Assembly (NCBI GenBank): GCA_964247055.1 | Contig: OZ176051.1 | Span: 5,146,001-5,210,000, forward strand | DNA from: Paragordius varius | Taxonomy: Eukaryota > Animalia > Nematomorpha | Length of the DNA: 64,000 nt | Direction: 5' to 3' | Shown here: positions 6,901 to 40,821 of the stretch, piece by piece | How positions within the stretch are numbered: the first letter of the stretch is position 1 | Layout: the number at the start of each line of letters is the position of its first letter | Made by a program: the position numbers and the translations under genes | The notes under the pieces: generated by a model | Database searches by the model: none | Seen by the model: only the letters and a program-made list of their open reading frames with translations | What the model was told of the DNA's origin: nothing

Positions 6901-9007
6901 CTGTTAAATATACGGCCTTTATTTTCCACTTCTTTCATCTGAAAAATTAATAAATACTATTTAATTCAGATTTAAAAATGAATGATCGTTTAAAATTTGT
7001 TTTTTATAAATAATTTTTTATGATGTACAAAAAAATATATTAGAGATAAGAAATATAGGACTATATATTTAATGTATATTTATTATTAAATAAAAGATAG
7101 GTAAACAAAACCATTTGAAAATAATCTTTTTAACAAAGTGTATTCTATTATTTATTCATTTAAAATTTTATTATTTATAACGGACCATAATTTAAGTCCA
7201 AAACGTATGTTAATTAATTTTTTATTTAAATATTTTATTTAGAAAATGATTATAATTAATTCATTAAATATCCATTTACAGTTCAGGTTCACTTGAACAA
7301 TTCAAATATACTCTTTCACCCTCGAACAATTTAAATTCCCCTTCAAACATTCAAATTTACCCTAAAATAAATAATACGTTTTTTTAAGATTAAAAATTAC
7401 CTTTATTTTTTAATATTTTTAAAATATGAAATTCTGTTTAAAATTAATATTAGGCTGAAAAAATAATAAACTAGGTAATAAAAATTTATTTCATATTAAT
7501 AATAATCATATATTAGCCCAAAAATACTTAATTTATTTTTAGGGTTTAAATTTTTCAAGGGTGAATTTTAATTGTTCAAGGGTGAATTTGAATTGCAAAT
7601 GGTATACTTCTTTTTCATATTGGCTGAGTCTTGAAAGTTGTTCTTGAACAAATTTTTCGTAATCTCCCAATTTTGCAGCATTTATACCAGGATTATTTTT
7701 ACCATGGTCTATTAACTCTTGCATGGTTTGCATTTCTGCCCTAAAGTAAGTAGTCAACAAATAAAAGTTTTTAGTAAATTTTCAAAAAATTATAAAATTT
7801 AAAACTAATTTTATATAGATTGCTCTTGATAAAATAAATTTATAGAAATAAATTACAATGATGATTTGAGTGCTCTCTGAGTCTTATTTTGAAGGTTGAT
7901 TTTTTGATCATTTAGACCAAATATAATATTCCATTTTTCGCTTTCTTCATCAAGCTAAAAACAAATTTATTTATTCAATTAGAAATATTGATAAAAATAA
8001 AACCTTAACTTGTTATATATATAAAATAAAAGTACAATTTTTTACTAATAAACTTTATGATTTAAAACCTGTTGATATAAAACATATATATCCAGAATTT
8101 TTAAAAAATATACATATGCTTTCAATTTTCCAAATATAAAATTATAAAAATGTGATGGATAGTTTTGCAAAAATTATTAAACCAAAAAATATTTGAATAA
8201 ACATTTTTATAAAATAGATTTGTCTTACATTAGAGCTATCCTTTTCCATAACATCTTTGTAGGCGTTAGTATGAAGTTCTATAAATTTTTCGTATTCACT
8301 GAAGATTCGTTCCAAACTCCCAAACATAGTCAGAAAATTTTTGTAAGATTTCACAAGTGATTTTTCAATGTCTGTTATTATGAGAAAATATAGAGTGTTT
8401 CGCAATTTCATACCAAAAAACAATTTACGATTCAAAAAAAATAGTCTAGTAGTTTTAATTTAATTACCATTTAATTTAAGGTTGTTGAAAAATCTTTAAA
8501 AAATCTAAAAATATAAAACCTGTTTCTGCATTGTGTAGAGTCGGTGATATTGCCTCAACCAAAATAGCTAAACAAATGAAATAAAATACATTTTTCAAAT
8601 TTATATTGGTAATTTGTTTAAAAGCTTTGTATATTAATAAAAAATATTGTATGTATATTTAACCTTCTTTCTCTTTTTTTACTTCTTTGTCACCATATAA
8701 AGGCTTATTCAAACCAAGTCCTTTAATAAATTCATTTAAATCATCTATAAATGAGCGTATAGGTTGCACGTAATCTCGAAGTGGATCACTATATTTGTAA
8801 AATTTACAATTCATACTTATCAGATACAATTCGATCAAAAATAATTTTTGAGTCTGGAACGTAATATTCGATTTTATTTCTAAATTCGGGATCGTGCGCA
8901 TATATGTAAAAAGCCGAGCCTGCGGCAGTCAATCCCAAAAATGTAAGCGTTTTATATGGAAACTTGGACCTATATAAATTGAAAATGGGTAATAAACTTT
9001 TTAACAT
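1000..9007 (-). CDS. IMMT: MICOS complex subunit Mic60 (mitofilin), 17 exons, ~805 aa
   Basis: Phase-consistent GT-AG exons: 9007-8817, 8788-8664, 8567-8520, 8371-8229, 7954-7857, 7740-7608, 6938-6806, 6429-6338, 6258-6106, 5600-5460, 4981-4894, 3963-3653, 3270-2900, 2167-2069, 1922-1823, 1549-1458, 1099-1000 (2418 nt). Family motifs: N-terminal TM plus YAHDPEFRNKIE; DLNALLVHAYKKL; QLWAVSCAL; RVAMVHDPDSSLLRYAFSYLQSLF; DTFEVLSLAEYY; LRGQPRLVADGWINDA (mitofilin domain). Confidence 0.92.
4537..4805. mobile_element. hAT-family MITE in IMMT intron
   Basis: CAGGGGTAGGCAAC ... GTTAAACACCCTAG imperfect TIRs; flanks CTGTTATG / CTGTAATG (7/8 TSD). Confidence 0.7.
7272..7602. mobile_element. TA-flanked MITE with 21-nt subterminal tandem repeats (family A)
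   Basis: Ends CCATTTACAGTTC ... GAATTGCAAATGG flanked by TA/TATA; subterminal repeats of CAATTCAAATTCACCCTTGAA in inverted orientation at the two ends; related copies at 20947-21260, 22177-22368, 45997-46232 and 49897-50070. Confidence 0.8.
8789..8816 (-). other. 28-nt micro-intron (IMMT intron 1)
   Basis: gtatgaattgtaaattttacaaatatag; removal joins ORF 8804-9007 to ORF 8659-8901 in frame (phase 2); read-through hits a TAA. Confidence 0.75.
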
Positions 9008-9085
9008 TTACATAAGTTGAATAAAAGACCGAATTTGAAACGACGCGTGACAACATTTAGCAGTATATTGTTACTTTGGCCAAAA
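9008..9085. promoter_or_regulatory. 78-bp spacer between divergent start codons of IMMT and LIPT1 (putative bidirectional promoter)
   Basis: ATG on - strand at 9007 and first ATG on + strand at 9086; contains the CpG palindrome ACGCGT. Confidence 0.6.
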
Positions 9086-11600
9086 ATGCAAACATCGAAA
9101 ATACATGGTAATAAATTACATATGATAACTCTTAAGAGTTATTTAAACGCACCGATTTTATTTTCCCAATCCAATAACATTTTCTATAACCTTGCACTCG
9201 AAACATATTTGTATGAAAATTCCTTTCAAAAACACCTTTTGTTTTACATTAATCAGCCTTCGGTGATTATTGGTCGCTTTCAGAATCCGTGGAAAGAAAT
9301 AAATTTAGAATATGTGAAAGCAAACACCATAAATGTTGCTAGGCGCTATAGCGGTGGAGGAGCTGTTTATCATGATTTAAACAATTTAAATATATCATTT
9401 ATCACTCAAAGGTTAGAATACAATCGTAAAAATAATTTGTTGTTTATTCAGGATTCTTTAAAAAAATTGGGGTATACCAATTTAACTCTTAATGATAAGG
9501 ATGACATTTTGCAGAATTCAAACAAAATATCTGGAAGTGCTGCTAAATTAAGCTCGAAAATGTGTTATCACCATTGTACTTTGTTAATTAACTCAGATTT
9601 GGAAAAAGTGAAAAATGCCCTAAACTCGCAGGTAAGGTTTACTATATTTGCCTTTTAGTTTCGGGTGTAACCGCTCGAAAACTACCTTTCTTTGTTATTA
9701 TCAAAAAATAATCTCGCAATTATTTTGCACTCTAAGCAAAAAAGAGGGTTAATTTTTTTATTTATGGAATAGCTTATGACCAGCGAATTCATTTGCCGAA
9801 ATTATTATTTGTTGACAACCTAGTTTTAGAAATATTGAGAGAAAAAGGATAATTGAAAAAACAATGATAAAATTTGAATTATTATGGTTTATTATTATTT
9901 TAGGATATATTAATATTTAAATAACTTAAAATCTATAGTTAGGGCTTCTATAAAATTTCAGGTCAAAAGCTGGTGTTTTTCTTTTAACACCCTTAAAAGA
10001 CAAAAAATTTTAATGAAACTATATTAAAATAATTTTTTTAACTACTTACTACCTAAACTCACTACTAAAATCTTAACATTCAAATTCAGTAAAAAAACAT
10101 ATATCAAAATAATACCAAAAGTATTGTTTTTTATTTTTGCATTTTTTTGTCATCTGGTTTATAAGTGCATAAAAAATTTATACTGTTTTATTTTTGAATC
10201 TTACATGAGATATAATTTATGCGAAATAGGATTCAAAAGTAGTGGAATATCAACCAACAATCCGCACAAATTCCAATGAAATATTAATTTGTTATAAAAC
10301 AGACTTGTTATAGGGATTTGAAGGATTGTTGGTTAATTCCACTACTTTTAAATTTTATTTGCATAAATTATATACTTATAATTCCCACTCATGTAATCCA
10401 AAATAAAACAGTATAAATATTTTTACACTCCTAGATGACAAAGAAATGCAAAAATAAAAAGCAATATTTTTAGTTTTTTATTTTAATATATAAGTTTTTT
10501 TACTGAATAAAATATGAATGGTAAGATTTTAATAGTGAGTTTAGGTAATAAATAGTTAAAAAAAGTATCATATAGTTTCATTTAAAAAATTTCGTCTTTT
10601 AAGGGTGTTAAAAGAAAAACGCCATCTTTTGAGCTAAAATTTTATATAACTAACTATATGATTTAAGGCTTTATATTAAAAATATATGCTAAAATGATAA
10701 TAAACCATAATATCTCAAATTTTATCATTATTTTTTGATTTATCCTTAATTATCCTTATTCACTTTTTGCCCGATTTGGATTTTCGCTCAATATTTCAAA
10801 AACTAGTTGTCAACAAATAAAAACTTTTGCGGCAAATGAATACGCTAGTCATATATAAATTTGTGAATGCATAGAAATTGTTTTTTTAGGATGTATTCAT
10901 TAATTATAAACAAACGGAAATTGATGTAAATTTGTGGATATATTAATTTTCAATTATTTTTTATTAGAGATTATGACACTAAAACAGATTCAAATTATAA
11001 CAAATACTTGCTTCATGGTGTAACTGTTTATGGTTATGAATGACTGCAAATTAACCATAATATTGATATTTATTTATTTCATTTATTTAAAAACAAACAA
11101 AAACATTAATTTCAATTTATTTGTTTTTGTAGATTATCATAGATGAGTGTAAAGGAACACCCAGTAGAAAATCATCCGTTCAAAATCTATCCCCGGAAAT
11201 TGATATCAAAAAACTTTTACTTTTTATTAGCAAAGAATATTCACGTAAATTGGACAAAACTAACTTGGCCATTTCAAACAAGGCCCTTGTAACTGAAATA
11301 AATCCTGAATGCTATGCAAAAGATCTCCAACAATCTTATTCAACCCTATCAAGTTGGGATTGGATTTATGGGAAAACGCCAAACTTTGTTTATCAAATTG
11401 AACATTCCGGTCATATGTATGATATACATGTTCAAAATGGTATAATTACTGAAATAAAAACCAAAAAAGGTGATGGTTTTAAAAATATTCAAGACCAAAA
11501 TGTCAAATTTAATATTCCCTTAATCCCTCAAATACTTAATCAATACGATGATTATTTATTGCAAAGTTCTAAAACCAATAAAATATCTAACAGGAGCTGA
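9086..11600 (+). CDS. LIPT1: Lipoyltransferase 1, mitochondrial; 2 exons (9086-9631, 11133-11600), ~337 aa
   Basis: NLALETYLY, NQPSVIIGRFQNPWKE, RRYSGGGAVYHD, KISGSAAK and HHCTLL motifs; CAG|gtaagg donor and tttgtag acceptor, phase 0; C-terminal WDWIYGKTPNF. The start could be the next Met at 9122. Confidence 0.93.
9775..10853. mobile_element. ~1.08-kb palindromic (foldback) element in the LIPT1 intron
   Basis: Arms of ~500 bp are reverse complements (TATGACCAGCGAATTCATTTGCCG vs reverse complement of GCGGCAAATGAATACGCTAGTCATA), centre near 10290; moderately diverged. Confidence 0.85.
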
Positions 11601-23900: not shown

Positions 23901-26900
23901 AATACTATAAATTAAATTTCTTCTAAAACATAATATTATTTAAGATTTCTTAAATTATTGAATAATTAAAAGAATGTCCAAAAATTAAGTATATCGAAAT
24001 AATGTGTATTAAAAACTTAAGATACCATAGTAAAATAATGCACTTAAAATCTAAATGATCCTATATTCAAATGGTAAATAACACATTTTCAATAATTACA
24101 ATTATTAAATAAAATTTAATGATAAAACTTGCGGGAAAAATTAATTAAAAATGCTAATGTTTAAAAAAATATTAAACTCATATTCATAGTCACATTCTAT
24201 AGTGCTTATAATGTCATTTAAATCTACATAAAGCCAAAAATATTTTTTGTAACTTAATAAAGCAAACAAACATGCACGTTTATATTTGCGCAGAAAGTTA
24301 TTACTGTCTTTTTTATTTTCCAAGGACTTAAACAATTGCGACACCATATCATGTGAAGGCTAAAAATAATTGCTTGCTTACTTACTTAACTTAATTTTTT
24401 GCAATTAAATTTATACAATGTTGCAAATATGTCACAATTTTGCTAATTATACAACGGTAGATTTAAGCATAATTTAGCAGAGTATAAAACGCGACCAACA
24501 AAAAAGTATTACAGTAAAAACATGTTATATTAGACCTTTAGTGGTTATTACTATACAAAAAATCACCATAATTTAATTCAATTTAAATCAACCGATAATG
24601 TTTGAATAAATACGGGTTATATTAAAACTTAGTAAACAATCCCAAAGAGATATTTTACGGGTTTATAGAAAAAAAATTCAAAAAAACCTGAGCCCATAAA
24701 ATCAGTTAATCCACCGTTAAGCATAAACGATTGATTTTGCGTCAGTGGTGTCGTAATAGATGATTTTGCCAATGGGACCATGTTAAAGATACTATTGACA
24801 GGAAAATTGCTATTTTTCGTAGCAAAAGTTGCGGGAGCATTTTTCCCAATAAAATTGGTATTGGAATTGGTAGAGATAATATTGGGATTGGCATTATTAT
24901 TGGTGCTGCTGTTATTGTTATTGTCATTAAAATTATTATACAAGTTTGATGGGTTATTAAACATTGAACTGGGATTATTTAACGTACCAGAAACCAAATT
25001 GGTCAAATACGTGTGATAAGATGTAGGACTCATAATAAAATCTGACGCTGTTTTCCCATTGAAAATGCGTGTAAAATTAATGTTTGCTCCTCCGCCATTA
25101 TTAGATCCATTCAAACCGTTATTCTTTTTGTCACTTTTGTGATTGCTATTATTGCTATGGTAAGTAAAAGTTTGAGATGTGGATGCCATATCAGACGATG
25201 GCTGTATAATTGAAGAAGTGGAAAAATTTGCAGGAAAAAACCAATCAAAACCACCAAAGGAAGTGGTACTACATGCATCATTGTTACTACATTGTTGCAA
25301 TTGTTGAAATCTAATAATGGGAAAATATTTATTTTCAATCAATTTTTTACGATAGTTATAAATTAAGCAATTCTAGAGTGAAATGATAAAAAAAAACATA
25401 ATAAAATGTGACTTTAACACAGTTTAATTTATAATCAATTGGTAGTATCATGGAAACTAATTGCCAAAATTATAAAATGATTCGTAAAATCAATTAAACT
25501 CGTCTAATAAAAAACATAATAAATGTGGCTTTAAAGCGGTTAAATTTATAATAAATTGTTAGTATCATGGGTAATAATTGCCAAAAATATAAAATCATTC
25601 GCAAATTATAAAATTATACCGAACATTCTTATTCCACAAAAGTTTATTCATAAAATTACTCTCAATGAGAAATACCGCTGCTTAAGTAAAATTATACCAT
25701 TTCCATAAAAACTCATAAATTAATTAATATTTTTCGCACTTTTATTGCTATTAAAAAAATCTTTAATAAATAAAAAACCTTAAAAATTAAATTTTTCAAA
25801 AAAGCATGAAGAAATGTTTTCCAAAAAAGATTTTTGAAAACTTACCTTAGTTGCTTTGCTGCATCGCAGGTTAGATTGGGATGCCAAACATTTTTACAAT
25901 GATAACAAAAGTAGGTATTACATCCTGGCCTTTCACACCTAATCATAGGACAACTGGCACATCCATGAGCAATTAGTGCAAATCTTTTCGTATAATTTTT
26001 TGTTGAATATAAATAATACGACAAAAAAATAGCTTTATTAAGTCGTATTAAAAGAACTTTTTATTTTATTATAAATTTTTTAAATCGATTATCAAGGTAA
26101 GAGAGAATATTAAATGAGAATTATGCACACTTTATTGTAAAACCCTAAATTCAACATAAAATATGGTTGATGGATCGAAAAATTGAATGTGCTACCTTTT
26201 AATAACATCAAATTATGATAAAAACTAAGAAATATATACGTTATAAATTAGAATTAAACAACAAGATATTACAGTAATAACAAATTTTTATAAAAATAAT
26301 GTAAAAATATAGCACCTTTAATTCATGTATAATAATAAATATAAATACCATAATAAAAAGCGTAGGCGTAATGTAAAAATAAAAATAAATTACTAAATAA
26401 TAATGTTTAAAATAAAATTAATATTATCATTATATAGATACCCGCAATCCGGAGCAGGACACCATCTTGCATCTGGCTCTGAAACCAAATAACGACGCAA
26501 AGAAAAAAGTTCAAACTTTGATAAAAGATTTCTACCGGAACTAAAATATATTTTTATAAAAATTTTACTCTAATTTTTCTTTTGAATCACTATTTTCTTT
26601 TGCCCCATTAAGGCAAATGTCAGAAATGTCAAACGGATCAATTTTGTGCGTACATTTGGGACAAGATAATATTATGCGACCCTCAGTGATTTCAATTTCA
26701 AAATACTGAAAAAGACAGGATCTACAAAATATATGATCGCAGTTTAGCAATGTTTTTAGGTAAGCAGAATTAGATTCAAATTTATTATAACAGAGCGGGC
26801 ATTCAGTTTGTATGAGAGGTTGGGCCAAATCTATATCACCAGACACCGTTTCCAACTAAATTTAAATATTATTGTACTTGTATTGTTTTAATATCTTTTG

Positions 26901-27051
26901 ATGGTTGAGCTGAATCATCCTTATTGTTTATATTAGAATAATAATTGGAGGATTTAAAAAGCCTATTGAAATTTAGGCGCTTTTGTTTAGGAGTTTCCAC
27001 GGTTTTTGAAGGTTTGCTCTTTTGAGCAAATAACGTATTGTTTTTAAACAT
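11968..27051 (-). CDS. RNF19A: RBR E3 ubiquitin ligase of the RNF19 (Dorfin) type, ~20 exons, ~1775 aa
   Basis: Exons: 27051-26878, 26855-26569, 26540-26442, 25983-25846, 25310-24688, 23886-23733, 22580-22418, 21953-21845, 20869-20569, 20186-20059, 19778-19208, 19052-17991, 16540-16020, 15721-15707, 15676-15543, 15455-15355, 13779-13507, 13271-12990, 12696-12640, 12103-11968 (5328 nt, all phases consistent). RING1 CPLC...CDHIFCRSC...CPKC; [12 protein letters not shown]...CASCP...FCYHCK.VWHPN.TC; RING2 CPRC...[10 protein letters not shown]...[39 protein letters not shown]; TM region [15 protein letters not shown]; late STKAMAGSI motif. Low-complexity middle exons are less certain; RNF19A vs RNF19B is not resolvable. 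Confidence 0.9.
14160..14700 (+). repeat. Dispersed repeat, copy 1 (diverged direct copy at ~52360-52890)
   Basis: Colinear shared blocks AAAAGTTTTAGATATGAAG, GAGAGCGCAAAAAACTG, GATGTAAAAGTTATTTGG, CCTAGTGGATA and ATTACATAATGG. Confidence 0.8.
15677..15706 (-). other. Candidate 30-nt micro-intron preceded by a 15-nt micro-exon (RNF19)
   Basis: gtatttaaacatattttgtaacaaaaacag removes the only in-frame TAA from an otherwise open exon that starts at a strong ttttttag acceptor (15722); direct splicing to 15676, skipping the micro-exon, is also in frame. Confidence 0.5.
20947..21260. mobile_element. MITE family A copy (left end truncated)
   Basis: Six 21-nt CAATTCAAATTCACCCTTGAA-like units, shared AT-rich core, right end GAATTTGAACTGTTAATG. 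Confidence 0.75.
22177..22368. mobile_element. MITE family A copy lacking the core (near-pure palindrome)
   Basis: About three forward 21-nt units directly followed by about four reverse-complement units, ending GAACTGTAAATGG. Confidence 0.8.
22706..23357. mobile_element. hAT-family MITE in RNF19 intron
   Basis: TAGGGTTGTGC ... GCAAAACCCTA ends, GACC/GGTCA subterminal repeats, perfect 8-bp TSD ATTACAAT. Confidence 0.9.
26541..26568 (-). other. 28-nt micro-intron (RNF19 coding intron 2)
   Basis: gtaaaatttttataaaaatatattttag joins the RING1 exon to the [24 protein letters not shown] exon (phase 2); an AG 9 nt further on (37-nt intron) is also in frame. Confidence 0.8.
26856..26877 (-). other. 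22-nt micro-intron (RNF19 coding intron 1)
   Basis: gtacaataatatttaaatttag joins ORF 26869-27051 ([13 protein letters not shown], like the RNF19 PKKRRISIGSLFR segment) to the RING1 ORF, phase 0; both ORFs are closed by stops inside these 22 nt. Confidence 0.75.
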
Positions 27052-27832
27052 TTTCTATCAATTTGGTCATTTTATTGACCTTTGGGTTTCCAGTACAAAA
27101 TTAGGTTCCAATTCGAATCAGTTGTTTTAACGTAAAAACCAGAAACATGCTTCTACGCACATTATATAAATTACATAAAATTGGGGTATGATAATATCTT
27201 GTTAATATAATATTATTTTATGAAAAATGTATTATGTTTCTCATTTTCTTTTAATATTGGGACCCACGACTCATTGAATTTAGTTTATTTCTGTTTATTT
27301 ATCCTTATCGAATAGTCTTAAAAGAGGGCATATTATGTCAAAAAAAAATTAAATAAGATTTTCGCAATCATATCGGAATAATATTTATAATATATTTAAA
27401 TTGTATGATGTGACCATAGAATATCTCATATTTTTTGATCTTTCCAAATACGCATCAAGATGCAGAGATTAGGGTTAAAATTTTTTAAAAAAATGATAAA
27501 TTAGACATATGTTTTTGAAAGACGTATACTTTACTTGAAATAAGCATTATTACATTTTAAGGTGCCTTTAAAACGGTGTAATATCTTCTATGATATTATT
27601 AATTCTTGCGGAAGTTTTTATATATGTATTTTACGTGAAAGACTCGGTTTTTAAATAAGCCTATATTTTAAAAACATAATTAATATAACCTAAAAATTAT
27701 ATTCTTTTATATTTCTCAAAAAACTATCATATGTAAATTTATTGAAAACTGCCCAAAATATTATGGAGTGTTAATCTTTTTTACTTTTCAGGGTAATTTT
27801 TTCATCTAGCGATTCAATTAATAATATATTTA

Positions 27833-35341: not shown

Positions 35342-35538
35342 TAAATATTAATGCAACATTGTTTTAAAACTATATATAATGCAATATATTTTATACACGA
35401 TATATATAATTTTTTATGCTATAATAAATTCTTTTTTTCGCTTATTACACGGGTAAAAATATTGTATCTCACAGCAAAAAATCTATGTAAACTATTTAGA
35501 GGGGGGGGGCGTTTTTGGGCCGTTCGAGTAGAAAGCAC

Positions 35539-35802
35539 TCATAGAGACGGTGAATATGCAAAAAATGCTTTTCGTATCGTATCGTCTTTGTGTAATGGCC
35601 AGCCATTGTATCCGTATAGAAGCTGTCTGTAATATTTACGATCCTGCCAGGCGTTATCATCAATGTTGGCAACATTTATATCATTATTTATTGTTTTTTT
35701 CCAGTTAGATGTTGGTCCCCCTGTTATTGTTACCTTCTTGATGTAGTGTAACTTATTGGGTTGGAATAAATCCGCTTTTCTATGTTCATAGTTTTTTCTC
35801 AA
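35539..35802 (-). mobile_element. 3' fragment of an RTE-type non-LTR retrotransposon
   Basis: TITGGPTSNWKKTINNDINVANIDDNAWQDRKYYRQLL resembles the RTE ORF tail RGRP..W...I..D.......A.DR..WR.L. Confidence 0.55.
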
Positions 35803-36727
35803 TTAAATCTGTCATCGGCCAAAGGTAAGAGAGAAGGATATTATATTTTCATAAGCCAACTAATATAAGGTCAATTTAAACATAACAAACCGTCAGTCAT
35901 CCTAAATTTTAAAATAAACAATTACTTGGTTAAGATTTTATTTTAAGGCATAATAGTATTGTTGAACACATCATATATGGTAAATATTTAAAATTTTCAG
36001 ATGAAAAAATGAAATTAGTATTTACAGCTGAGTAAATTAAATAATTTTTTACATAAAAAAAACAGCAAAAAAGCTGTAAAAATTAAATTTATTTTTAAAA
36101 GTTAAAGTCCACAAAGATATTACAAAGTTATATTTATACTTAAACAAACATTATTAACATCCAAGAACATAAAATAAAGTTTGTATTGATTTAATAAATT
36201 GATAAAAAATATTTGTGTGAAAAAATGTTAAGTTACCCAATTTTTGAGGGTTTTTGCCCCCTAAAACAAAAAGTATTGGATATTTTGGGTAAATTTATTT
36301 TTTATTTTGAAGATAAATTGGTAATTTCTTGTAAAAATACTTATGTAAGCCACATTTTATTTGTTTACATAGCGAAAAATATTTACAAACAAGAAAATTT
36401 TGGATATGTCCAAATATGGAAAAAGTCTCATATCTCGAAAACGAGCTGGGTAAGTAAAAAAATTTTTTGCGCAAATCTGATCACAATACTATAAGGAATC
36501 AGAAAATATTTAGAAAATCGAGTCCAGAAAAAGTTGTGTCACAGTGTTATGTATTCGTTCAACATGATATCAGGGAATGAACGAAAAATAAATATTATAC
36601 CTAAATGATGTTTTTAAGAAAAAAAAGATTATTAATATCTGCTATTAGCTGCGCCAGTTGGTAACGTGAAACAATATTAAATAAAATAAAATTTATTGTA
36701 ATAATGCCAATAGGTAAACAAAAAAAT

Positions 36728-38230
36728 TTATTTTTCATCACAAAGAGCTTCAGATGCTTCTCGATATCTCTTTTCCCATAATTTTTCGTGGTCGACAAAC
36801 CCATCTTTCCCTTTGTTGAATGAATTAGGTCCAGATGAAGTTGGTGTATTTCTACAAACACAAAACAGTACAAGAGATGATAAAAAATTGAGATTTTTTT
36901 ATATTAGATGGAAAACAAAAATATGACTATTACCAAGTTTATTATGGTTAAGTGTATGTAAAAAAATTATATAAATTCAACGGTATTAAAGCGAAATTAA
37001 TATAAAAAGAATTTTTGTCGGTCAATACAAATATTATTTAAATATATGTGTTTGCATTTGCAATTACAATTATATCTGATGTAATGGGTAATATTGTTAG
37101 GGTGTGAAACCAAATGTAATGAAAATTTAATGATGGCATACCATTTTTCATTAAATATTTACACTACATTTGTGATTTAAAAATTTATATCATATGATTC
37201 CAATTTTACTCGATCAAAGCCAAATTATTTTTTAATATTTTGATAATTAGCCTTTCAATAACTTATAGCCTGATTTTTGTGTTATAATTATAAGTAATAT
37301 AATTTTCTATAACACAATGCGCATAAGTTTTAATCTTATTGATTCATATGCTAATCAGTATATCAAATATGCAAGATTTACAGGTTTGAACAACCGATTT
37401 CAGTTTCTATATCTCGTGAAAAGGCGATTTTCCACATATGTACAAATAATTTTTTTATAAACAAAAAAAATTAAATAATTTCGCAGATTCAACATATTTA
37501 AAGCCTATTTTTGGTTTATATGTCTCTTTATTTATACATTTTTATCAAGTGAGGGTTTAAAGCATTTTAAAATCAAAAAACTGTTGAAAGAACCACAAAA
37601 GCTTATGAAAAAAATTGATAAGAAAATATATGCAAAAATTGAGTTCGCGTTTAAACAAAATTTTAATTGACAATTAAAAAAATTTGAAAATATTAAATTA
37701 AAATGTATTCTGAATCAACTAATTCTTCAAGATTATATTGTGTGAGAAAAAATTAATTTAAATATTTACCGGGTATGTGAGGTATCAAATTGTAAAAACA
37801 TATCTTTCCAAAATTTAATCATAATAAAAATTAAAAAAGATGATCTAAGACTAATTGATAAAATTGATTAAAATATACTTTCCAATATTCCGCATCTTCA
37901 TTTTCGCTTCAAAAGGCATTTCTTCTGGTTCACTCTGGAGATAATAAAAAAGAATACCTCATCTTCGATAAAAATGGATGCTTTTAATTTAGATTCTTTA
38001 ATTACAGCGGGAGGTTTTTGTGGATTTTTGTTTAGCTTTAAAGCTATTGTGTTTTTTGGCTTTTGAAGCTGAGTTTCAAAAACTTTTGGCTTCTTAGATT
38101 CAACTGTTGCGTTATCACTTTTCCTTTTTTCAATAAAATTAACATTTTCTTTCTTCCCTATTTATACTAGAACGTTAGATAAGGTTTATATAAAAACTTT
38201 CATCAAAAAATAAAATTTACCTTTTTCCAT
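36728..38230 (-). CDS. PCNP: PEST proteolytic signal-containing nuclear protein, 4 coding exons, ~129 aa
   Basis: Exons 38230-38221, 38157-37958, 37934-37879, 36851-36728; encodes [51 protein letters not shown], the conserved PCNP C-terminal domain. Absent from the ORF track. The start Met is inferred. Confidence 0.93.
37935..37957 (-). other. 23-nt micro-intron (PCNP)
   Basis: GAG|gtattcttttttattatctccag|AGT splits the contiguous conserved motif EDE|SEPEEMP; length is 3n+2, so it cannot be read through. Confidence 0.92.
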
Positions 38231-39912
38231 ATTGCATGTAAATGAATGCAGAATAACCAGTCGGATCTGGAAGGATAAGCTAAAAAAATCCAAATATAAT
38301 TTTAACAGTCCATGACCTTTTACTATACCTCGGGACGATTTGATATTTAAAAATATAAAAATGTATTTATGTTATTAGCCGAATACAAAAATATGCTTTC
38401 CTTAACTTTTTTAATATAGAAAATTATTTTTTAAAAATGCGAAATTGCAAAAAAATCTTTATCTCAAACTTTTGTATCGCCATTTTTTTCAAGAGTTTTT
38501 TTAAACAACTGCCAAATAAATGTTTATGATAGAAAACCAAAAGTTTTAGGGTTTACCAACAAAAGCTTGATATATATTGATTTTGAGTTCAGCTGTTAAA
38601 TCGTGTTTAGAACCTGTCCCAATTTTAGACTTTAGAAGTCATGTAAAATTATAAACTTTTTTATTTAATACATGAGAACAATATTTTGTAAAATTAATGT
38701 AAAACTTTTAAAACAGTAGTTTATGTACGAAATTGATCTGTGAACTGCCCCATGAACTAAGGCAAAAAAGAACTTGTCATAAAATGTAATTATATCATCA
38801 TCTGGCAGTAATGATATATATATAGTTCGCATACGAATCAATAAATAAAATATAATATTTTACCTAAACTGTAACTTTTTTTCAAACAACCACAGCGTCC
38901 ACAAAAAATATGTTTATGAAATATATATTTCTGATAGATAACGATTATGATTGTATTGCTTTTGGGCCTAACGAGCAGTATAAATTTTTTACAGTTTTTG
39001 TGATAACTGCTCCGTGTTAGAAAATAGGTTAATTAGGAAATTCCAAATATAATTTGGTGAAGGCTAAATGTTTTCTTTAATATAACTTAAATAACAAACT
39101 ATAATTGATAAACAAGACAATTTTTTTATAAAATTTTAAACATATATGGGTTTCTAAAATCTCAAATTTTTAGACCGACTATAGCCCTGCATCCGAAATT
39201 AGGTGGTATAAAATACCTGTACTCAAAAACAATATTAGAATTTTCATGCTTCTGATGCATTAAGAAAGATATAAGATAGTTATTTGCACTTTTGTTGGTT
39301 ATCACTCGATATCGTAAAATCGCCTTGAGCGCACATTATGTAATTTTTGGTAAATGCTAAATGCTATATTCCGAAATATATCATATATATATGGCATACT
39401 ATATTAAAGCATAGCAAAATTTATAAAATTATTTTTAAAAGGCTCCGAAAGTCGGAACTTTTTCGCTTTCTAAAATTTGTTTTTAATATATATCCAAAAA
39501 TGCCGAGATTTTGCATTATATATATGTGCTAGATTACACAGTTGGCACAAAAAATAACCTGATGAAATATATATCTTCTGAAAAAAATTATCATGGTGTT
39601 TTTAATTTTAGCTCTTACGAGATATTTAAGAAATTTATTTACACTTATGTGGTAACTGCTAGTAAGATGAGACCACAAATAAGGGAAATATGTATTGTTT
39701 ATATATTCAAAAATACATACATATATATATATATATTAGCGTAAATCTCGTGCTGCTAGACAGCCCGAGGAAGTCCTTCGGAATTCCGGGGGCTATTTGA
39801 AAAAAGGACAATAAAATGATCCACATATGTGGATTATTTCGAAACAATATTTAATAACTATGATCTCATAGTAATTTTAAAATGGTGCATTCATACTAAT
39901 ATATTGTTTACT

Positions 39913-40821
39913 TGGGCGAAAAATAGATTCAAAGAATTATTTTTTTGAACTTTGTTTTTTGAAAAAAATGGCATTTTACGGAGGGAGCGGGTAAAAAGAG
40001 GGCCTAAATTAAAAAAGTTAGTCGACTATGTTCGGCACAATCGAAAATAAGTAAACAAAAATTATGTTTGAAAGTGAATGATCCAACACGTTCTGCGGAA
40101 AATTGTCTTAAAGACATATTTGTGGACTTTAAAAAAACCGTTTTTCACACGGGGTGGGCCCGAACTGGGGGCCTATTTCAAAAAAAATGCGAAGTTATTG
40201 TCGGGGCATTCATTAATGATTATATTCTTTCAATGTTTAGATTTGAATGGGTTTACCGGTTTTCCGGAAACAGTTCACAAAGCCACCACTTTCCATTTTT
40301 ATAAATATATAGATATCGCAAAAGGTCATTGTGCTACTATGTGTATGCGTAACTTAAAGAGGTGTAAATGTATTTTCATAGAAGTAAAGTGCATGCAACT
40401 ATACAATTTATTCAACAATATAATAACACTGCGTGTAAAATCGGGGACTATGAAAAAATAACCTTCTGAAAAATATATATTCTGAGTCATTCAAATCCAA
40501 ATGTCGAAAATATATAATCATTAATGAATGCCCCGACAATAGCTTTGCCCTTTATTGAATTAAGTCCCCAGTTTGGGCCCACCCCGTGTAAAAAACGGTT
40601 TTTTTGAATCAGAAGTCCACAAAAATCGTGTCTTTGAGACAATTTTCCCGAAAACGTTTTGGACCATTTGATTTCAAATATGATTTTTTTTACTTATTTT
40701 CGATTGCGCAGAACAAAGTCGGCTCGGTTTTTAAATTGCTCTTTCGTTCCCCCCGTAAAATGCCATTTTTTCAAAAAAATTAGGTCCACAAAAATAATTT
40801 TTTAAATCTATTTTTCGCCTA
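39913..40821. mobile_element. ~910-bp element with ~340-bp TIRs
   Basis: GGCGAAAAATAGATT, AATGGCATTTTACGG, GGGGTGGGCCC and TTGTCGGGGCATTCATTAATGATTATAT are mirrored in 40490-40821; ~240-bp unique core. Confidence 0.85.

Follow-up and report, generated by a model that had tools for sequence, protein, structure and literature searches.

The PCNP gene of the hairworm Paragordius varius raises the question of whether 23 nucleotides that separate two of its open frames are a spliceosomal intron of a functional gene. The window, that is, the whole stretch of DNA that was analysed, is 64,000 nucleotides long, and its GC content is 21-35%. The first-pass annotation of this DNA claimed that the 23 nt interrupt an otherwise contiguous family motif, EDE|SEPEEMP, and that a functional PCNP requires their exact excision. 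The range that it gave (37879-38157) corresponds exactly to exon 2, the 23-nt segment and exon 3 of the model described below. The first claim holds in that the flanking frames are offset by 2 bases, the segment has GT..AG ends, and a family hidden Markov model (HMM) is contiguous across the exons; the second agrees with the profile contiguity, an intact model of 129 codons and the phase-0 introns of orthologous genes. Very probably the segment (37957-37935, minus strand) is a true spliceosomal intron of the U2-type GT-AG kind in a functional PCNP gene, of ancient origin and shrunk to 23 nt in the lineage of this hairworm.

Gene model and family profile

The PCNP model lies on the minus strand and is complete: four exons contain 390 nt of coding sequence, or 129 codons from ATG to TAA. 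Exon 1 (38230-38221) has 10 nt, namely ATG and 7 further bases, and its end splits a Gly codon (phase 1); the presumed start codon is the first ATG of the open frame, and a donor, GTAAAT, follows the exon immediately. Intron 1 (38220-38158) is 63 nt long, with GT..AG ends and 19% GC. Exon 2 (38157-37958; 200 nt) ends with ..FIEDE in phase 0. The 23-nt segment, which takes the place of intron 2 (37957-37935; phase 0), begins with the donor GTATTC and ends with CCAG, the acceptor being CAG. Exon 3 (37934-37879; 56 nt) reads SEPEEMP..NIG and ends in phase 2, and intron 3 (37878-36852; 1027 nt, GT..AG, 22% GC, phase 2) separates it from exon 4 (36851-36728; 124 nt), which extends up to the TAA stop. 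GT..AG ends are thus found in three of the three introns (63, 23 and 1027 nt). Stop codons occupy 7.4% of codon positions in the window DNA, and at this frequency 129 codons would remain open by chance with a probability of about 5e-5.

All PCNP searches were run exon by exon, and the exons were never joined. With the Pfam profile PF15473 (PCNP; cut-off 27 bits), a 20-residue piece covering exon 3 scores 33.5 bits over profile positions 103-121, and exon 4 scores 53.7 bits (E 4.9e-14) over positions 122-153, so that the profile is contiguous (121|122) across the 1027-nt intron. Exon 2 has no Pfam match, and a BLASTP comparison of it with the PCNP of another hairworm, Gordionus, gives no significant match. 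Homologues were collected by searching exon 4 against 1.84 billion representative proteins, which yielded 85 matches. From these a family HMM was built of 18 PCNP homologues, with mammal-like ones omitted, and it was run on every minus-strand stop-to-stop piece of 36600-38300. It gives three matches, which follow the order of the exons: HMM positions 16-76 fall on exon 2, 77-96 on exon 3 and 94-135 on exon 4, the last with a score of 64.7 bits. The exon 2 match (i-Evalue 7.5e-4) stops on the final E of ..FIEDE, and the alignment of the homologues agrees with this end point; by these searches exon 2 is only weakly similar to the PCNP family. Since exons 2, 3 and 4 lie back to back on the family HMM, removing exactly the 23 nt restores the contiguous family sequence.

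The frame that ends with ..FIEDE at 37958 and the frame that opens with SEPEEMP.. at 37934 are offset by 2 bases. Retention of the 23 nt shifts the frame and leads to a stop after 19 codons, so the conserved C-terminal half of PCNP would be obtained from spliced mRNA alone.

Intron position in other animals and integrity of the gene

The closest PCNP among the 1.84 billion representative proteins is that of the hairworm Gordionus sp. m RMFG-2023 (XP_065312697.1), whose reported genomic GC content of 26.9% is in keeping with that of the window. For the annotated loci of other species, each PCNP protein was mapped exactly onto its own DNA. The Gordionus gene has introns of 108, 39, 40 and 40 nt, and the one at the boundary of the 23-nt segment is a 40-nt, phase-0 intron that directly precedes the Ser opening the acidic ..MPFEAKM exon. 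The introns of the two hairworms are alike in gene, codon boundary and phase, and both donors start with GTATT; they differ in length (40 nt versus 23 nt). Phase-0 introns are also present at this boundary in the tunicate Clavelina (1556 nt), the mollusc Aplysia (1223 nt) and the cnidarians Nematostella (558 nt) and Oculina (2044 nt), and there is none in the beetle Phyllotreta or the aphid Acyrthosiphon. Because boundary and phase coincide in hairworm, tunicate, mollusc and cnidarians, the intron position predates the cnidarian-bilaterian split, and the orthologous introns indicate that the 23-nt segment is an ancient intron that has shrunk rather than an insertion into a pseudogene.

The other introns of the gene follow a similar pattern. 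A phase-1 first intron is common to the window, Gordionus (where it is the 108-nt one), Clavelina, Aplysia, Nematostella and Oculina, and the phase-2 position of intron 3 is occupied in every compared species but the aphid. In addition, Gordionus, Clavelina, Aplysia, Nematostella and Oculina keep a phase-0 intron after a ..LKL.. motif. This intron is missing in the window PCNP, where the corresponding sequence belongs to exon 2 (37958-38157, minus strand); on this comparison of gene structures, its absence is an intron loss in the Paragordius varius lineage.

The alternative that bears most directly on the function of the gene is that of a pseudogene, or of a 23-nt insertion that has disabled the gene and whose GT..AG ends are accidental. 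The first-pass annotation had itself named a pseudogene copy among the findings that would overturn its reading. The poor conservation of exon 2 speaks for this alternative, as does the fact that the species' own PCNP was not found in protein collections: under the length limits that applied, a word search with the open frame of exon 2 gave no match, and one with the Gordionus PCNP gave 12 relatives, none of them from the window species. Excision of the segment is, moreover, something that we infer from sequence. Against it, four of four exons are open and in register, three of three splice-site pairs are canonical, and the segment lies exactly at the intron position common to Gordionus, Clavelina, Aplysia, Nematostella and Oculina. 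The frequency with which GT and AG bound a given 23-nt stretch by chance in the window is 0.0015. The comparison with Gordionus over exons 3 and 4 points the same way. The residue is the same at 41 of 57 aligned codons, and the codon differences number 9, 9 and 21 at the first, second and third positions, respectively, with 15 codons differing in a purely synonymous manner. This excess at third positions indicates purifying selection and counts against a pseudogene. In a nucleotide alignment with Gordionus, exon 3 matches well and the introns do not align. Some residues are common to the two hairworm proteins and lacking in other phyla, e.g. the F in MPFEAKM and KDGFVD. With open exons, canonical splice sites and the third-position excess all in place, we consider that a pseudogene or a disabled gene is very unlikely, and the reading as a functional gene with a 23-nt intron is retained.

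The length of the segment can also be examined in independent DNA. A contig from a second sample covers 37780-38260 and differs by 13 substitutions, with no gaps; in this haplotype, which is about 2.7% divergent, the segment has the same length, so the 23 nt are real DNA and not an assembly slip. Nine sequencing runs contain sequence of the locus, and none is recorded as RNA; runs presumed to be RNA contained none of the sequence words searched for. The four runs that were examined at the locus behave as DNA: intergenic and intronic DNA are covered alike, the 23-nt segment is present, and, as DNA would predict, no joint is listed at 37958/37934. As a separate observation, a run filed under another organism label has contigs identical to the window over 36876-39304, at a low depth of 3-5, consistent with a host, with contamination or with mislabelling of the sample.

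A second alternative is that the 23-nt version is not real and that a larger intron, using a neighbouring GT or AG, gives a shorter PCNP. The first-pass annotation had asserted that neither side leaves room for another splice site; this proved incorrect, as three other frame-keeping GT..AG pairs (62, 71 and 110 nt) exist near the segment. All three preserve the frame, and their sizes would be easier for ordinary animal spliceosomes. However, each costs the protein 13-16 residues, among them the ..F.EDE end or else the SEPEEMP.. core, both kept by every family member. In addition, the exon that follows this boundary is exactly 56 nt in Paragordius varius, Clavelina and Nematostella alike. A further AG, 2 nt beyond the acceptor of the 23-nt intron, leads to an immediate TGA. 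Excision of the 23-nt segment is the sole nearby GT..AG removal that spares the frame and the conserved residues together, and we regard a larger intron as highly improbable.

Candidate splicing signals in the 23-nt segment

The donor of the 23-nt intron, GAG|GTATTC, agrees with the usual motif agGTaagt only at AG|GTA, and past GTA its pairing with U1 is poor. The segment is 74% pyrimidine and has adenosines at positions 13 and 16. The first of these, A13, stands in a TTTAT context, which fits the loose branch motif of animals, and lies 10 nt from the acceptor; A16 is the second candidate. We propose the following arrangement: the donor GAG|GTA would be followed by a branch adenosine 7-10 nt upstream of the acceptor, most likely that at position 13, then by a short pyrimidine run and finally by CAG. 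The first-pass annotation had expected donor, branch point and acceptor to be packed together or to overlap. Packing describes the arrangement well (GTA donor, candidate A13, pyrimidine run, CAG), and overlap is not needed.

How such an intron would be recognised is a related question. Recognition across the intron (intron definition) is the most likely mode, and a conventional U2-type spliceosome would be the economical reading. The hint in the first-pass annotation that special machinery might be needed gains no support here, and other animals with such introns have a conventional U2-type apparatus (PMC13644364).

The remaining alternative is removal by a non-standard route, either as a U12-type intron by the minor spliceosome or as a cytoplasmic intron of the IRE1/XBP1 kind. 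Of the first nine bases of the segment, 8 agree with the U12 donor consensus RTATCCTTT; for the branch consensus TCCTTRAY the closest agreement is only 5 of 8, and the orthologous introns carry U2-type donors such as GTAAGT, on which grounds a U12-type identity was rejected. Unconventional XBP1-type introns are 23-26 nt long, and the segment is thus near their size. An IRE1/XBP1-type identity was rejected as well, since the 86-nt fold around the segment is not significant (z -0.62) and contains no twin stem-loops with cleavage sites. Taken together, a non-standard route is scarcely credible.

Ultra-short introns in other animals and other features of the window

Until 2026, animals were believed to have no introns shorter than about 30 nt (PMC13644364). 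A survey of 51 animal genomes published in that year finds introns of <30 nt only in myxobolids and Dicyema, and does not mention hairworms (PMC13644364). Two hairworm genome papers do not discuss introns, and among the papers listed by a literature search none pairs hairworms with intron length. The 23-nt PCNP intron is a known kind of ultra-short animal intron, in a third lineage. It has the length (23 nt) and the donor reduced to about GTa that mark the <30-nt class. Dominance of short introns, another mark of the class, is not seen locally: one of the three PCNP introns is tiny, and a LIPT1-like gene in the window has a single intron of about 1.5 kb.

Among known systems, the myxobolid myxozoans (Henneguya, Thelohanellus and Myxobolus) resemble the window in several respects: their introns are GT-AG, measure about 20-27 nt and occupy conserved positions flanked by conserved exons, of the donor about GTa is left, and the genome is that of a parasite and AT-rich (PMC13644364). 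The survey also cites a Myxobolus genome that is highly repetitive. These introns were validated by the same positional argument that is used here for the PCNP intron, and conventional U2-type splicing was inferred from conserved U2 snRNA and U2AF (PMC13644364). Myxobolids belong to the phylum Cnidaria, have a median intron length of 22-27 nt, and have a pyrimidine tract that is missing or extremely short (PMC13644364); in contrast, the PCNP intron is 74% pyrimidine and stands beside introns of 63 and 1027 nt. Dicyema japonicum is likewise an animal with introns of <30 nt and reduced splice-site motifs, but it is a spiralian whose genome is compact and whose introns are as a rule short (PMC6736024, cited in PMC13644364).

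More distant comparisons are also instructive. Ciliate introns (about 25 nt in Paramecium and 15-16 nt in Stentor) are similar in size and are removed by a conventional spliceosome; ciliates differ in that they are protists, and almost all of their introns are tiny, with no kb-sized introns in the same genes (PMC5014332, PMC13644364). In human, short introns that depend on SPF45/RBM17 have truncated pyrimidine tracts and are handled distinctly, and they offer a possible model for two coexisting size classes, although the model intron has 56 nt, more than twice the 23 nt of the PCNP intron (10.1101/784868).

A 23-nt intron in an ecdysozoan would show the lower size limit broken a third time, and the PCNP intron sizes (23, 63 and 1027 nt) would mean that tiny and long introns are handled in one transcript. 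In Gordionus the lower limit for short introns looks like about 40 nt, as three of its four PCNP introns have 39-40 nt. A wider proposal, on which our judgement is evenly balanced, is that splicing of introns of <30 nt is routine in the Paragordius varius lineage, within transcripts that also contain kb-sized ones, which would make it the third such lineage among animals and an independent one, Gordionus keeping the limit of about 40 nt. If so, the shrinkage would be recent and datable within Nematomorpha, and hairworms would provide a comparative system in which to find what enables the spliceosome of an animal to work below 30 nt. Some of the gene loss reported for hairworms might then also be suspected to be a failure of gene prediction at tiny introns. 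Gene predictors usually reject introns this short, and such genes would then be split or called missing. The completeness of the Gordionus genome is 71.6% by BUSCO, and tiny introns may exaggerate the low completeness scores of hairworm genomes.

Across the window, GT..AG segments of 18-45 nt linking open frames number 405, whereas segments bounded by seven control dinucleotide pairs number 428-558, so this ORF-based scan has no power to tell a tiny-intron class from controls. Besides PCNP, the window contains a CALML4 region and the following two genes. The LIPT1-like lipoyltransferase gene (9005-11597, plus strand) has exons at family-profile positions 8-179 and 182-313 and the single intron of about 1.5 kb mentioned above; GT..AG candidates of 22-27 nt just past its first exon were rejected as false by the family profile, two candidates of the window-wide scan among them. 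Relatives of this gene include nematodes and Hydra among the best named matches, and no hairworm match. The second gene encodes an RBR-type (RNF144-like) ubiquitin ligase (26396-27054, minus strand), with a RING exon at 26569-26855 and an IBR exon from 26540 downwards. A candidate 28-nt GT..AG segment (26568-26541) lies between these two exons, with long open frames on both sides, and a candidate 22-nt GT..AG segment (26877-26856) upstream of the RING exon also joins long open frames. In PDB sequences, coverage of this ligase is limited to its RING1 part.

Finally, the window has two repeat-like regions. A foldback element of about 900 bp (39915-40819) consists of nested inverted arms (75 nt at 85%, 63 nt at 81% and 121 nt at 72%). 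An open reading frame inside it (40078-40458) has no Pfam match. The summed contig depth of the element is about a million, against 400-1300 in adjoining unique DNA, which implies very many genomic copies, and contigs connect its two arms on opposite strands. A second repeat-like stretch, at 35400-36600, has a summed contig depth of 5e4 to 3.6e5 in the three runs of one organism.
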